Below are positions 2,291-46,893 of a DNA stretch of 64,000 nucleotides, in pieces. Made by a program: the position numbers and the translations under genes. The stretch lies in sequence record PV037725.1; one strand, given 5' to 3'. The notes under the pieces are model-generated. The model did no database searches. It saw only the letters and a program-made list of their open reading frames with translations, and was not told the DNA's origin. The first letter of the stretch is position 1; each line of letters starts with the position of its first letter.

Positions 2291-3598
2291 ATGACTGATA
2301 TCACAATCTTACCATTCGACTTGACTGGTACGATGGTATCTAACCTACGCACGGGTGAGGAACATACCCTCACTCGGGTAACGGGTAGAACCAACCGTAT
2401 GTTTGCTCCTAAGTTTGGGGCATACTACAAAGAGTCGCTTGAAGTTAGAACCAGTGCGGGTGTAAAGCTCACCTATGACACTGACTACGTTTGCACGTAT
2501 TACTACGATGACATCTGGGACCTCAATGCCAAAGAGTGTTGCGCTATCATCGTTGTGACTAACCCAGCCATTGGTAATGATCTCAGGATTAGTTACCAAG
2601 CTGTAGGTGGTCCGTACGCGCTCAACCTTGATGAACTCAAAGAACTTCTTGAAGAGGTAGAAAATACCCCTGAATCTATCAAGTGGGAAGACATCCGGAA
2701 TAAACCATTACAGTTTCCACCTGAGTTACACTATCATGAGTACTGGCAACTGTACGGTCTTGAGTCTACTATTGAAAACCTTGAGTTGTTAGGTGAGGCA
2801 TGGACAGTTGGCCGGAAGGGTGTGTTAGCTGATAACCGTTACTACTACGAGAACTATATTGGCTTAGCTCAGAAAGCTCTCGATGATTATAGCGCCAAGG
2901 TTACGGCACACATCACTGACCGGTCTAACCCACACCTCACTGATAAAGAAAAGGTCGGCTTAGGGTTACTGAATAACTGGGGTATGGCTAACAGCCAAGA
3001 AGCTGCGACCCAAACCGTTAACAATAAGTACCAGCCTATTGGTGGGGTATACGATCAACTCGAAGCCAATATTTTCCCGGCATTCGACACACACCTTCGA
3101 AATCAGAATAACCCACACCGTGTGCAGTTAACTGACCCATTGCTTGATCTGTACAGTACCACTCAAATTCAGACAATGATTGATCTGCATTTGAAGCGAA
3201 CTGAGTCAGCGTACGACACTCAGGCTTTCCAGAACCTTACCCCTACTCAGTTGTACACTAACTTTAGAACCGGTCTGGATGCGAGTAACGTTACCGCTGA
3301 CAGCGTAATGCCACAGAACCTGATAGCCCCATCTATTCCCGGTTGGGTACCTGGGGATTACGTTCTGACTGGCGCAAACCAATACGTACTGTATTCGACC
3401 TTAATGAAGTCATACAACGATACCCAGGGTAGTGTGTATTACATCGGCTCCACGGCGTTAGCCAGTTGGGCGCATCTTAGTACGGGTACGTATGTTATCT
3501 ACGGTGCACAGACTGATTACAACGATCGTCGTACAATGCCATACCTTGCAGTATATGAGAAAACAGGCCCAGGTAATTCCTGGGTACAAGTAGCCTAA
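2291..3598 (+). CDS. Tail-fibre-associated virion protein (paralogue 3)
   Basis: ATG 2291 follows GGGAG. Motifs HITDRSNPH and HLRNQNNPH. N-terminal half aligns by eye with 904..2280 (xPxDxxG start, WxDxxxKP, HxxWxLxG). Confidence 0.6.
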   Translation: MTDITILPFDLTGTMVSNLRTGEEHTLTRVTGRTNRMFAPKFGAYYKESLEVRTSAGVKLTYDTDYVCTYYYDDIWDLNAKECCAIIVVTNPAIGNDLRISYQAVGGPYALNLDELKELLEEVENTPESIKWEDIRNKPLQFPPELHYHEYWQLYGLESTIENLELLGEAWTVGRKGVLADNRYYYENYIGLAQKALDDYSAKVTAHITDRSNPHLTDKEKVGLGLLNNWGMANSQEAATQTVNNKYQPIGGVYDQLEANIFPAFDTHLRNQNNPHRVQLTDPLLDLYSTTQIQTMIDLHLKRTESAYDTQAFQNLTPTQLYTNFRTGLDASNVTADSVMPQNLIAPSIPGWVPGDYVLTGANQYVLYSTLMKSYNDTQGSVYYIGSTALASWAHLSTGTYVIYGAQTDYNDRRTMPYLAVYEKTGPGNSWVQVA

Positions 3599-3607
3599 GG
3601 TGACAAA

Positions 3608-4213
3608 ATGACTGAAGAAACTAAAACCCCACGTGAATACCCTAACCGTATTCCTGCAACAGCTTTATTCAACCGCCTTAACGGTGAACTCGTATCGGTA
3701 TCCAGTTCACCTCTTGGTGAATCACAGCACAACGAAGAATATTACATTGCTCGTGAGGTAATGTACGACTTCGGTGCCAATGGTGACAAGATCGAGGGTA
3801 ATATCCTCATCAGTCCTAACGGCGTAATCACGGATAACTTCAAAGTACTTGCTGCGGATGAACAAACCCCGACGGTATATGAAGCCCAGTTGAATGCCAT
3901 GGCGGCACAGAAGATCACAAAAATGTACCCGCTGACTAAACAACTTAACTTGTTGGTGGCATGTGTTAATCGCTTGGGTAAGGAACATGATCTTCTAGAA
4001 ACAGAAGAGTTTGATACATTGAACGAAATGGTTGAATACATCAATTATTGCGTACAAGTCAACCAGACTAAGAAAGAGCATTATGCCAATGACCCAACAG
4101 TTAAATACGTCAGTGACGAAGCCGCAGCTGAAGCCGTGTCCCGTAGCATGGAAGGCGGCATCCATGAAGAAATTGGCCCAAGAACTATTACCGGTGGTCG
4201 CGTTTGGAGCTGA
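3608..4213 (+). CDS. Hypothetical protein, possibly tail-fibre assembly chaperone
   Basis: 201-aa ORF with AAGGT RBS, directly after the fibre genes. KITKMYPLTKQLN segment resembles fibre-chaperone-type proteins; function inferred mainly from position. Confidence 0.35.
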   Translation: MTEETKTPREYPNRIPATALFNRLNGELVSVSSSPLGESQHNEEYYIAREVMYDFGANGDKIEGNILISPNGVITDNFKVLAADEQTPTVYEAQLNAMAAQKITKMYPLTKQLNLLVACVNRLGKEHDLLETEEFDTLNEMVEYINYCVQVNQTKKEHYANDPTVKYVSDEAAAEAVSRSMEGGIHEEIGPRTITGGRVWS

Positions 4214-4646
4214 TGACGCCAAACAGATTGTCGAGTACTTGGAAGACATCGATCCAATTTACTGGTTCCATCGCTTAAAGATCAATAGTATTCCAACTAA
4301 GGGTACAACCGAGGCGGACTATTGGTTTATGGGTGATGGTCAGATGCCACGCGAGTTGAAGCATTACTTGAATGAACTGGCTCCAACTATTGATGGGTTT
4401 AAGCCTACTGAGATCTGTTTAAATAGATACGAGGTTGGTAATGGAATGCCCGAGCATATTGACCGGGCATTTTATCGGTACAACATGGTTATCCCATTAA
4501 GTGATCATGGCGATGGTTTGTTCGTTGAAGACGAATGGTATGTAGATCAGCCTGGCTCTGGTTTAATAATGCCACTCAAGTCTCCACCCCATCACGTACC
4601 ACCTGTCACCCATCGGCGATACACCCTCATCTATCTTTACGACTAG
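4164..4646 (+). CDS. 2OG-Fe(II) oxygenase superfamily protein
   Basis: ATG 4164 after GGAAGG. LNRYEVGNGMPEHID (HxD), distal PPHHVPPV His, and RRYTLIY 2OG-binding Arg on a beta-rich core. Confidence 0.75.
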   Translation: MKKLAQELLPVVAFGADDAKQIVEYLEDIDPIYWFHRLKINSIPTKGTTEADYWFMGDGQMPRELKHYLNELAPTIDGFKPTEICLNRYEVGNGMPEHIDRAFYRYNMVIPLSDHGDGLFVEDEWYVDQPGSGLIMPLKSPPHHVPPVTHRRYTLIYLYD

Positions 4647-42476: not shown

Positions 42477-43343
42477 TCACCCACGTAGCCAGTTAGGCTG
42501 ACGGATACCGCGAGCACGTTCCCAACCCAACGAGTGGATCAAGTCAGATACGTCATGTACCACCGACTCAAGACCAAGGTTAGTACGACGCTGAGCTTCG
42601 TCCTGCAAGCGCCAGAGAGTATCTGGAGTGATGATGCGCTCTGGTTTACATTCAGCCTCAGAGAAGCCCTCAAGAGCTGGAGAGGTATATTTGTTAGCTG
42701 TGAAGATACCGCCCTCACCAACGAAGTCCCAAGTTGAGATTTCACGAGTGTACTTAACACCACGGTAAGGATCATCTTGAGTGATGGACCTCACCGAGCA
42801 ATAAGTATTGATACTAGGGTTATCCAGAGAGTCTTTGAATACTTTAGCGTAAGGACCGTATGGCTTGGCTTCAGCAATTACCATAGTAACTGGCTTACCT
42901 TCCTCATTCTTACCCGGCATCAAAGTCAGGTTACGAACGTGGGCACACACACGGTTATCATCAATCTGACGAATACGGCAAAGGTACTCAGTATCAGACA
43001 TTGGTTTACGAACTACACGACCATCGATCAGTAAGTCAACGAACGGCTCAGGGTGTTTGAATTCCATGAACAGAACGCCTTTCTTCAATCGGCGCATAAG
43101 AGCACTGTTGGGTTCGAACATAGCTCGACCCGAGGCTTCATCGTAAAACATACCAGCGGAGTTATGAGTGCCATAACTACCAACCACCAGAGTGTAATAA
43201 CCTTGAGCGTCAGCTGGAAGGATACCACGTTTGTTAGTGCCAGCCAACATAGCACACCCAACTGTAACAGCCGAGTGTGATGTCGGAACCTGACCCATTT
43301 GGTTGGGGATCGTGCGACCCGCAACAATACCATTCAGATTCAT
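42477..43343 (-). CDS. Prohead (head maturation) serine protease (phiKZ gp175-like)
   Basis: LFMEFKHP (His), VCAHV, YCSVRS (Ser), ISTWDFVGEGG. C-terminal self-cleavage-type motifs PALEG and GLES. Syntenic position. Confidence 0.8.
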   Translation of the reverse strand: MNLNGIVAGRTIPNQMGQVPTSHSAVTVGCAMLAGTNKRGILPADAQGYYTLVVGSYGTHNSAGMFYDEASGRAMFEPNSALMRRLKKGVLFMEFKHPEPFVDLLIDGRVVRKPMSDTEYLCRIRQIDDNRVCAHVRNLTLMPGKNEEGKPVTMVIAEAKPYGPYAKVFKDSLDNPSINTYCSVRSITQDDPYRGVKYTREISTWDFVGEGGIFTANKYTSPALEGFSEAECKPERIITPDTLWRLQDEAQRRTNLGLESVVHDVSDLIHSLGWERARGIRQPNWLRG

Positions 43344-44079: not shown

Positions 44080-44403
44080 TTACCCTTGGTATTGTTTGAT
44101 AATTTTATTTAATGTCTTAGTGGTATCTTTGATCAGCTTGAGACGATCTTTCTCATTTTGACCATACCAGCTATTACATAGTTCATCGTAGGCTCGCTCA
44201 CCATCGTCTTTACCGCTAGTTACACTATTGGCTTTGATGTACAGATCAACGAGTTTCTTACCCTCGATCGGGTGGTCCTTAACGGCCAGGGTGATCCAAT
44301 TAGATTGGCAACCCGCATCTAGCAATGCTTGCTGTTCTTTTGACCTACTTGGCTCAATGGCTTCCAAACTTAAACAAAACAAATTGCTCGATGTTAATTT
44401 CAT
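44080..44403 (-). CDS. Small hypothetical protein, possibly head-associated
   Basis: ATGA-coupled to the upstream ORF; LSLE|A protease-type motif near the N-terminus. Confidence 0.5.
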   Translation of the reverse strand: MKLTSSNLFCLSLEAIEPSRSKEQQALLDAGCQSNWITLAVKDHPIEGKKLVDLYIKANSVTSGKDDGERAYDELCNSWYGQNEKDRLKLIKDTTKTLNKIIKQYQG

Positions 44404-44642
44404 ACCTGACCTAACTTTTCTCTGAGTGTGTCATGAAATTTCTTAGCACCAGCAGCTTGCGCGTACGACTCTTTACGTTTACGTTCTTCAAACATTAACG
44501 GTGAGCCTTGGTGTATGTCTTGCAAGCGTGCAACGCGGTCAGGTAGATCGAATGTTGGGTCAATCCCCTCGGCGTCACAAGCTCTTGCAGCAGCGGTGTA
44601 AGCATCTTCTTTAGTGAAGAATTGTGGTCCAGCCTTCTGCAT
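44400..44642 (-). CDS. Hypothetical 80-aa protein, or frameshift extension of the upstream head protein
   Basis: ATG 44642 after GAGGA. The frame stays open upstream past 44741 and overlaps a slippery heptamer. Confidence 0.5.
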   Translation of the reverse strand: MQKAGPQFFTKEDAYTAAARACDAEGIDPTFDLPDRVARLQDIHQGSPLMFEERKRKESYAQAAGAKKFHDTLREKLGQV

Positions 44643-44734
44643 AGTTTCCTCTATAGGTTCACCCCGTCGCTCTTGCAAGCGAGCGAGGCGTCTCTGTAGT
44701 TCTTCAGGTCCCCATGCTTCAGTTGAAGTCTGGC

Positions 44735-46681
44735 TTAAGCTAAAGGGGTATCATCCTCTTCGTCTTCAGCAGTTTCTTCTTCCTCGGCTTCCTTAGGCTG
44801 TTCAGCGGCTTCATCTACAGTGGAGTTGTCAGCGTCAGCTTCTTCATCCCCAGCTTCGGATTCCTCTTCTTCGGTCTCAGTTTCCGCAGTGTCCGATTCG
44901 GAGTCTCCCAGTTCAGCGTAAGGATCTTCTTCATCGTCTTCACCTGCACCAAAGTCAGAATCGTCTTCGATAGTTTCAGATTCATCAGTACCGTCTAAAC
45001 CATTTGTCCCACTAGGGCCGTCGGTACCCACCACACCTTCCTCAACAACCTCAGTAGTTTCACTGAACTCGCCACCGTCTTCAACTACGTCGGTAGTCTC
45101 AGTTTCAGCAAAGTCGCCAGATTGTTCACTAACGTCAGTTACTTCAGCGGTTTCTTCACCATCACTATCGAAGTCCACTACAGCCAACAGACCGGAGTCA
45201 TCAATAGCACCACCTTCAGCAACAGCATTAGGATCGATCTCTGGAATGAATTCCTCAATCAGGATCTGCTTGGACAGGAACAATGCAACCAGACTCAAAG
45301 TAGCCTGAGTGTTCAGTTCACGCACGGTAGCTTTAGGGAAGTCTTGACCCAACGAATCGATAGCGTCAAGGTATTCGAAGTAAGTGTCTTCAGGGAAGTA
45401 CACACGGCAGATCAGAGTGGAGAACACTTTGTACGGGTTCTCGTAATCATCACGACGCAAATAGCGCAGCGAGTCTTTCAACTTAGCTTCGATGTCTTGA
45501 GACCAACGATCTTTCAGCAAGTCGCCATGTGCAACTTCACGGAAAGTGGAGATCACGTTATTGATGCACTGCCGCTCAGCATAATCAATAGCCGACTGTT
45601 TGATCATCGGATAGATTGCATGCCACCGAGCAATGAACTTGTCAGCACCAGCTTCAATGTGACGAAGGTTAGTTACACCAGTGTTCTCAATGGCTGCACC
45701 CAGTACGGCTTGGAAGTCACCACCGCCAACGATCCATGGATCGAATACGTCACCGTTTACAACTACTACAGCACGACGAGTTTCGATCGGGCTGATAGCT
45801 TCGTTACGCAGGATCAACTCACCGTCTTCACGTGCTTCAATACGACGCAGGTAAGCGCGCATCAAATAGAAACCGAACATCTCGTGCATCAGTTTCATGG
45901 TGTGTTGCCAATCTTCCAGATCAACCGATTGACCAGGAGTCTGCTCAGGGTTATCGATGTAGTGACCACAGATGAAGTAAGCGGTCAGAATATCGTCAAC
46001 GTTAAACGGGGCATTGGTAGCCGACAGATAAGGCAGACCTGCGGGTACTACTGGACCTGGCTGACCAAACAGACTAGTCCATACAGCGACGATACGGTCA
46101 GAACCAACTTGCAGTGCCCACTCAGTAACTTCTTCTTGTTCGAGATGCGGGTTATTGATAGCCATCATTTCAATGACAGCGTCAGCAGTAACTGGATGCA
46201 GCTCGTAAGAATCGTAGGTCTCTTTAGGACGTACGTTTACATAGCGGGTATTGACGTGGTTAACCAGTACAGGACTATCGTGAGGAGCCAGATAGCGCCA
46301 AGGCTTAACAGCGTACTCAGCTTGAGAAACAGTTTGTTGCATACCAGCATAAGTTTGATGCATCGCCTTAACAGCAGGAACGATAATGTTCGAGGTGTTA
46401 AACTGAATCTTAGAGATTGCATTAAACAGGTTGTTAACTACCGATTCACGGGAGTCATCACCAGCTGGGGTGGAATCTTGGTTGATCTCGTCAAAGTGCT
46501 CTTCAACAGCAACCATTTCCTGATCAGGCAATGGAGTGTTAGTTGGTTCAGCGTCTACTTGATAGGTATCGGCAAATACAGCCAAGGGGAACTCTGGGTT
46601 CCCCAAGGTCAGTACTTTACCTTCCCGAGTCAACTGTTGTGCGCCGTCGCGTACTGCGTCAAGAGTTTCGGTCTGGTACAT
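44735..46681 (-). CDS. Head/ejection protein with a hyper-acidic C-terminal tail (phiKZ gp177-like)
   Basis: 648 aa; the last ~150 aa are dominated by D/E. Lies between the protease and RNAP genes. Confidence 0.6.
   Translation of the reverse strand: MYQTETLDAVRDGAQQLTREGKVLTLGNPEFPLAVFADTYQVDAEPTNTPLPDQEMVAVEEHFDEINQDSTPAGDDSRESVVNNLFNAISKIQFNTSNIIVPAVKAMHQTYAGMQQTVSQAEYAVKPWRYLAPHDSPVLVNHVNTRYVNVRPKETYDSYELHPVTADAVIEMMAINNPHLEQEEVTEWALQVGSDRIVAVWTSLFGQPGPVVPAGLPYLSATNAPFNVDDILTAYFICGHYIDNPEQTPGQSVDLEDWQHTMKLMHEMFGFYLMRAYLRRIEAREDGELILRNEAISPIETRRAVVVVNGDVFDPWIVGGGDFQAVLGAAIENTGVTNLRHIEAGADKFIARWHAIYPMIKQSAIDYAERQCINNVISTFREVAHGDLLKDRWSQDIEAKLKDSLRYLRRDDYENPYKVFSTLICRVYFPEDTYFEYLDAIDSLGQDFPKATVRELNTQATLSLVALFLSKQILIEEFIPEIDPNAVAEGGAIDDSGLLAVVDFDSDGEETAEVTDVSEQSGDFAETETTDVVEDGGEFSETTEVVEEGVVGTDGPSGTNGLDGTDESETIEDDSDFGAGEDDEEDPYAELGDSESDTAETETEEEESEAGDEEADADNSTVDEAAEQPKEAEEEETAEDEEDDTPLA
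44741..44747 (-). promoter_or_regulatory. Candidate -1 ribosomal frameshift heptamer C CCU UUA
   Basis: In-frame X XXY YYZ in ...ACC CCT TTA GCT TAA. The -1 frame is open for 113 codons. Confidence 0.45.
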
Positions 46682-46692
46682 GGGTTAGCTCC

Positions 46693-46893
46693 TTAGTTGT
46701 AAGCTTTGAATTTAAGAATACGACCAATCAGACTGGCCTTGATATCGTTGGCGGTAAGATACTCACCCTCGATGGTATTGGCTGCTGATTCGGAACCCAT
46801 CGTGCGAGCGATAGCCTCGTAACCCAGTTCAGCTGCGGCAGTCAGAACCGCAAGGTTCTGACCATGTACTACGTTATTACTTTGCTTTTGCAT
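46693..46893 (-). CDS. Small hypothetical protein
   Basis: 66-aa ORF filling the gap between RNAP beta and the gp177-like gene. Confidence 0.55.
   Translation of the reverse strand: MQKQSNNVVHGQNLAVLTAAAELGYEAIARTMGSESAANTIEGEYLTANDIKASLIGRILKFKAYN

Follow-up and report, generated by a model that had tools for sequence, protein, structure and literature searches.

A probable -1 frameshift at the end of the gp177-like head-protein gene of Pseudomonas phage Viktualia and its relatives

Ribosomal -1 frameshifting within phage structural genes is a mechanism of a known kind, with precedents in T7 gene 10, A2 gp5A/5B and lambda G/GT. The capsid proteins 10A and 10B of phage T7 reportedly arise from such a shift, and the tail assembly chaperones of double-stranded DNA phages are said to be produced by a frameshift of the G/GT type. 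In retroviruses, a -1 frameshift fixes the low ratio of Gag-Pol, in which a structural protein is fused to extra domains. The -1 frameshift of the Lactobacillus phage A2 major head protein, gp5A/5B, is cited in a passage of PMC10885494 (Garcia et al. 2004). We analyzed a stretch of 64,000 nucleotides (nt) from record PV037725.1, hereafter the window, which corresponds at 100% identity to Pseudomonas phage Viktualia. The closest named relative of Viktualia is phage 201phi2-1, with 81% nucleotide identity over the gene core. At the 3' end of the Viktualia gene for a gp177-like head protein (44735-46681, minus strand; 648 amino acids (aa) in the 0 frame), comparison with related phages points to a conserved -1 frameshift at the heptamer C CCU UUA, which probably extends the protein by 113 residues.

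On the minus strand the gp177-like gene ends in ...GAG GAT GAT ACC CCT TTA GCT TAA. Direct reading places the slippery heptamer C CCT TTA, conserved as CCCTTT[AG], at 44747-44741 in the X XXY YYZ phase, with a single codon between it and the 0-frame stop TAA (44735-44737; T41, A42 and A43 of the junction alignment, all invariant), in agreement with the original prediction. The -1 open reading frame (ORF), present in the ORF list and in aligned homologues, likewise runs as predicted for 113 codons plus a stop (44400-44741, minus strand), from its first codon AGC (44741-44739) to a terminal TGA (44402-44400). Ahead of its first ATG it reads SLSQTSTEAWGPEELQRRLARLQERRGEPIEET. This first in-frame ATG, at 44642, is codon 34, leaving 33 codons without ATG as had been claimed; an in-frame TTG at 44678 (codon 22), which the earlier account did not mention, is preceded in Viktualia by no ATG, GTG or TTG. 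A TGA is present in the -1 frame just three codons 5' of the point where the -1 reading resumes, and there is therefore no entry into this frame from further upstream. The predicted trans-frame product consists of 647 + 113 = 760 aa.

This arrangement is like that of T7 gene 10 and A2 gp5, where the heptamer also lies in the last few codons of a head gene and one mRNA gives rise to a minor, C-terminally extended form. The G/GT systems share with Viktualia a conserved X XXY YYZ near the upstream stop; in G/GT a closely spaced stimulator is unnecessary, and in Viktualia it may be so too. The sites of both are recognised mainly by conservation of the slippery sequence together with the arrangement of the frames. 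G/GT differs from Viktualia in its gene, its role (tail assembly) and its heptamers, and protease cutting of the long product is not known for it.

Relatives were gathered by tblastn on phage genomes, by an IMG/VR scan, and by a profile search of 1.84 billion proteins with contig look-ups; the profile search returned 27 cluster representatives homologous to the -1 ORF. At 15 of 15 distinct junctions NNC CCT TT[AG] NNN TAA was found in phase and the -1 frame continues, open, into a homologous ORF; these junctions are those of Viktualia, 201phi2-1, Phabio, PhiPA3, IMG/VR contig L005, and ten further metagenome contigs (L018, L019, L021, L022, L023, L025, L027, L032, L034 and L036). Five lineages are without the downstream ORF (phiKZ, PS119XW, D6, a D6-like IMG/VR phage and Noxifer). 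None of them carries CCCTTT at the end of the gp177-like gene, and no ORF separates their gp177-like gene from the gp176-like one. Across these lineages, the presence of the heptamer tracks the presence of the downstream ORF. A scan of Metagenome_contigs gave no match; in public sequencing runs only contigs of close relatives were matched, none giving usable RNA evidence, and no variants were listed at 44697-44770.

The heptamer varies at Z alone (A or G), the position at which the slippage model tolerates variation. Among nine aligned full-length gp177-like genes, a single codon was kept in none of the 10 invariant Pro columns and none of the 11 invariant Leu columns, no Leu column was TTR throughout (0/11), and TTA and TTG made up 4% and 21% of Leu codons. 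As judged from this alignment, codon-level conservation of the heptamer is exceptional for the gp177-like gene. These counts bear on a rival reading, in which the -1 ORF is an ordinary small gene translated from ATG 44642 (or TTG 44678). What precedes it would then be a non-coding leader or an RNA element, and the C-terminal ...TPL of the head protein would be the reason why the heptamer is kept. We consider such an independent gene unlikely, as the synonymous-site conservation of CCT TTR is unmatched at any other conserved Pro or Leu.

The frame under selection was assessed from a 12-sequence alignment of the junction, using stop counts and the ratio of nonsynonymous to synonymous change (pN/pS). 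In the acidic tail before the heptamer, the 0 frame has a pN/pS of 0.50 and the -1 frame one of 1.41. Past the 0-frame stop the -1 frame is the low one, at 0.55-0.57, with 1.26-1.54 for the other two, and the 12 sequences held no stops in the -1 frame versus 5 and 19 in the others. Purifying selection, as gauged by these ratios, acts on the 0 frame up to the heptamer and on the -1 frame beyond it. The original prediction had singled out the interval 44741-44645; in it the protein-coding substitution pattern is confined to the -1 frame, and the -1 frame of the aligned relatives has no stops. Together with the retention at all 15 junctions of the heptamer, its phase, the stop one codon on and the open -1 frame, and the absence of the site where the ORF is missing, each comparative check proposed with that prediction favors a frameshift.

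The -1 coding signal holds for 15 codons ahead of a conserved hairpin described below, and for 19 codons between the 0-frame stop and the TTG. The selected -1 stretch that is free of starts ranges from 21 to 66 codons; the upper figure comes from contig L034, whose 66 -1 codons without any start are homologous to the N-terminal part of P0007 from another contig. The best conserved part of the -1 ORF, Q-x-S-x-E-[AST]-[WF]...RLxRLEERRGE, has no ATG, GTG or TTG before it in Viktualia. A stop-free coding signature that reaches upstream of the hairpin and of any start argues against an independent gene, and it also bears on termination-reinitiation, in which ribosomes would restart at the TTG or ATG 57-93 nt past the TAA and couple the two genes without making a fusion protein. 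The genes are close and on the same strand, and at the next junction (44400-44403) two ORFs overlap by ATGA, a classic coupling arrangement. However, the distance is long for bacteria, the TTG lies in a stable stem, and reinitiation leaves both the coding signature ahead of the TTG and the conserved heptamer unexplained; we regard it as highly improbable.

Still less probable, to the point of being negligible, is a chance heptamer beside a decaying or non-functional ORF. That the region can decay is shown by a degenerate remnant in phiKZ (see below), but the -1 ORF has its 27 homologous cluster representatives and is under purifying selection, and the site is conserved in 15/15 relatives. In a chance check, the window was found to hold 70 stop-to-stop ORFs that are 150 codons or longer, and the gp177-like ORF was the only one (1/70) with an in-phase XXXYYYZ (Y = A or T) in its last 60 nt.

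The original prediction had cautioned that ATG 44642 has its own GAGGA. In Viktualia this is so: GAGGA at 44651-44647 sits 4 nt before the annotated ATG (start region 44640-44651, minus strand, from reading and annotation), with a Shine-Dalgarno pairing energy of -6.0 kcal/mol, and it is a point in favor of an independent gene. The caution does not carry over to the relatives, as a good Shine-Dalgarno at the ATG was found in Viktualia only and pairing was weak or absent in the other 11 of 12 relatives. Mean pairing over the 12 was -2.8 kcal/mol at the TTG and -2.0 kcal/mol at the ATG, versus -5.5 kcal/mol for 37 neighbouring genes. The ATG position is occupied by GTG in L023. TTG 44678 falls within the stem of the conserved hairpin, and in PhiPA3 an extended helix (-46 kcal/mol, z = -6) buries the ATG too. 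A conserved independent start signal is, on these comparisons, absent at the -1 ORF.

One variant junction keeps the arrangement with a different sequence. Logan contig SRR10875135_14529 (L024) is without CCCTTTR; GCA AAG TAA ends both its gp177-like gene and the next, 128-aa ORF, placing the slip motif A AAG TAA at two tandem homologous junctions (780-1320). A AAG beside a stop is reportedly a -1 slip motif in bacteria. Both -1 frames read K-V-[TK]-T-Q-[SP]-S-N-E-[AT]-W and go on into the next ORF, with Q-x-S-x-E at the same spacing from the slip codon as in other phages. Since L024 keeps the junction with another motif, the conserved trait is -1 entry at this place and not one sequence, and retention of the junction peptide there is a further point against an independent gene. 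The tandem arrangement of L024 suggests that two -1 shifts take place in succession and that a linker cassette was duplicated.

The conserved hairpin is a 13-bp stem in the leader at codons 18-27 (RLARLQERRG; 44660-44690, minus strand), identified by pairing and compensatory changes. Its onset is 50 nt past the heptamer, or 41 nt in the shorter PhiPA3-type leader. In the alignment, 87.8% of its cells are paired versus approximately 50% in slid controls, and compensatory changes occur in two pairs, at synonymous sites. Its role is perhaps in 3'-end formation or mRNA stability, and it may suppress internal initiation; Rfam, promoter and terminator scans gave nothing relevant. In phiKZ (L011, ~4110-4140) the ORF is lost, and a degenerate leader remnant DDKLRYLEGYRSN is found with a perfect hairpin. 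In PS119XW (L013, ~4215-4245), where the ORF is also lost, the hairpin alone is kept and is intergenic. Food-metagenome contigs of close relatives carry three linked changes, at 44683, 44682 and 44667, which belong to one strain; by hand pairing, these shift the bulge and keep the 13-bp helix.

Several observations weigh against a frameshift and have to be set beside the evidence above. The relatives share a phylogeny, so the counts given for them are not counts of independent events. No conserved stimulatory structure was found 5-9 nt downstream of the heptamer in the 12 relatives. The 201phi2-1 record has a virion mass-spectrometry note on gp271 and none on gp270. The hairpin survives in phages without the ORF and therefore has an RNA-level role independent of the ORF, which accounts for part of the nucleotide conservation at codons 18-27; that it is conserved with covariation and persists as non-coding RNA in phiKZ is also a point in favor of an independent gene. 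Because the Viktualia ATG and GAGGA are usable, independent initiation may add to the shift or, in this phage, replace it. Finally, the GenBank annotation at the junction gives separate genes in Viktualia, 201phi2-1 and Phabio, and nothing in PhiPA3.

Two features noted in the original prediction lack clear support as stimulators. The Shine-Dalgarno-like GAGGA 6 nt 5' of the heptamer (44754-44758, minus strand, by reading) is present in Viktualia as described. It is not strictly conserved, being present in 10/12 relatives and missing in 2/12, and is a by-product of the acidic codons, which leaves its standing as a stimulator in doubt; it may add stimulation. A small proximal hairpin, CCAGACTTC/GAAGCATGG, likewise exists in Viktualia, but as a stimulator it was rejected, as it is broken in half of the 12 relatives and shows no covariation among them. 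The distal hairpin is unlikely to be a classical stimulator, given its position 41-50 nt past the heptamer and its retention in ORF-less phages.

Two further explanations were rejected. Transcriptional slippage would act on the runs of four C and three T read directly from the sequence, which are too short for it. A sequencing error or a genuine in-frame fusion does not fit with an arrangement that is common to 15 independent assemblies.

Under the proposed frameshift, a fraction of the ribosomes on the gp177-like mRNA would slip back one nt at C CCU UUA, one codon before the stop, with tRNA-Pro re-pairing from CCU to CCC and tRNA-Leu from UUA to UUU, and would go on in the -1 frame. The product would be a 760-aa trans-frame protein made up of gp177-like residues 1-647 and 113 further residues. 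The rare UUA/UUG Leu codon may help the shift, and a closely spaced structure would not be required. The extension would reach the prohead by riding on the gp177-like part, where the prohead protease (42477-43343) would then cut at S-x-E, eight residues past the shift, and free a fragment of approximately 105 aa. The N-terminus created by this cut would be similar to the N-terminal leader found in an internal head protein of the phiKZ type.

The carrier of the predicted extension is a head protein with described homologues. The original assignment of the 648-aa ORF as gp177-like is borne out by its match to PHROG 3841 (E=3e-136) and by its homology to 201phi2-1 gp271 (84% identical), phiKZ gp177 and PhiPA3 gp208; its C-terminal tail is acidic and ends in ...DDTPLA. 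Both 201phi2-1 gp271 and phiKZ gp177 are head proteins that the prohead protease cuts, the former at AVE-61 and the latter at SVE-60 (PMC5694885), and AVE-60 of Viktualia aligns with the AVE-61 cleavage site of gp271. phiKZ gp177 binds inner-body proteins and is injected into the host (PMC10449902), and the SPN3US homologue gp243 is needed for incorporating abundant internal head proteins (PMC5694885). These properties of the carrier, with the leader motif described below, fit the frameshift reading. It is the shell protein that T7 and A2 extend, and its long form remains in the shell; Viktualia is a jumbo phage, and its carrier is an internal head protein of the injected type. Also unlike T7 and A2, the Viktualia extension opens with a maturation-protease site, and the region is variable and modular.

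This site is S-T-E, codons 6-8 of the extension (44718-44726, minus strand), which by motif match is of the S/A/G-X-E type recognized by the prohead protease (PMC10449902, PMC5694885). It had been pointed out in the original prediction, and in every junction residues +6 to +8 past the shift hold an invariant S-x-E. Over 25-26 residues, the leader that follows S-x-E (RLxRLEERRGE...WM.K) has 56-58% identity with the extreme N-terminus of a PF12699 internal head protein of D6-like phages. The leader is therefore a module common to head proteins. It resembles the phiKZ-type PF12699 N-terminal propeptides and the T4 capsid targeting sequence, N-terminal regions of a kind that the prohead protease removes. 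Unlike the PF12699 leaders, that of Viktualia is internal and would become N-terminal only after the predicted cleavage, and a targeting role for it is putative. Searches of the extension against Pfam, PHROGs, NCBIfam, PDB sequences and the ESM Atlas found nothing as to function. No paralogues of the extension were found in the same genomes, where the ERRGE-coding pattern occurs once per genome.

In the D6-like contigs L008, L009 and L010 (~3001-3080), a 390-aa PF12699 (phiKZ_IP) internal head protein begins with RLARLEERRGE[ST]..EWM.K as its first ~25 residues. The gene for this protein in D6-like phages has its own strong ribosome-binding site.

The -1 ORF of relatives carries further modules, including a second copy of a GIDP...QGSPLM domain, a GNAT acetyltransferase and a PHROG 17560 domain. 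A 107-aa module, which in Viktualia is a separate ORF after the -1 ORF and joined to it by the ATGA overlap at 44400-44403 (44080-44403, minus strand; ORF list and BLASTP), is found in L021 as a fusion with the -1 ORF's end (BLASTP 1e-26) and in L024 as a direct 0-frame fusion with the gp177-like protein at its acidic tail (BLASTP 1e-12). Such Rosetta-stone fusions count in favor of the frameshift. We tentatively propose, as a possibility that we hold with appreciably less confidence than the frameshift itself, that cargo is loaded in the manner of Gag-Pol: a low-frequency shift would take variable accessory modules into the prohead, the protease would free them, and they could be injected with the DNA. 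In relatives such modules include the GNAT acetyltransferase, the PHROG 17560 domain and the 107-aa module, and S/G-x-E motifs stand at many module boundaries. The Gag-Pol fusion is carried into the particle by its structural part and freed by the particle protease, and packaging and cleavage in Viktualia would follow the same course; the comparison is an analogy only and implies no homology. If this proposal is true, the stretch from the gp177-like to the gp176-like gene would serve as a hotspot at which virion-delivered effectors are exchanged.

In full-text literature searches no paper was found that describes a frameshift for this gene or within Chimalliviridae, and the shift, if true, would be the first documented for that group. 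201phi2-1 and PhiPA3 serve as standard models of jumbo phages that form a nucleus, and a conserved recoding event in a protein that phiKZ injects would be absent from the proteome databases and mass-spectrometry searches now in use. Should loading and clipping of the extension take place as predicted, it would offer giant phages a simple route to package small amounts of variable accessory proteins, and would provide a handle for putting foreign cargo into capsids.

Relatives differ greatly in what lies between the gp177-like and gp176-like genes (P0003, P0017 (L022), P0007, P0008, P0010, P0011 and P0014). Among the modules there are a GNAT acetyltransferase, a PHROG 17560 domain that has a DGFHR-type motif, and GIDP...QGSPLM domains in repeated form, and [SG]-x-E sequences join many of them. 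Read by eye, several of the boundaries appear as [SG]-x-E then [SGA]F. In PhiPA3 (NC_028999, L012), a 313-nt gap without annotation after gp208 (4289-4601) contains the whole of a 107-codon -1 ORF, which ends in an ATGA overlap with gp207.

Gene order around the junction is conserved, running from the virion RNA polymerase beta-type subunit through a 65-66-aa ORF to the gp177-like gene, and on through the variable region to a gp176-like virion protein and the prohead protease (Peptidase S80). In Viktualia the head maturation (prohead) protease gene lies two genes downstream (42477-43343, minus strand; PHROG 3014, annotation, and Peptidase_S80 in syntenic contigs). The small ORF upstream encodes 66 aa (46693-46893, minus strand; PHROG 21542), is the counterpart of PHIKZ177.1, and has a 17-nt overlap with the 1506-aa virion RNA polymerase beta-type gene at the 3' end of the latter. 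This small ORF was kept in every relative examined.

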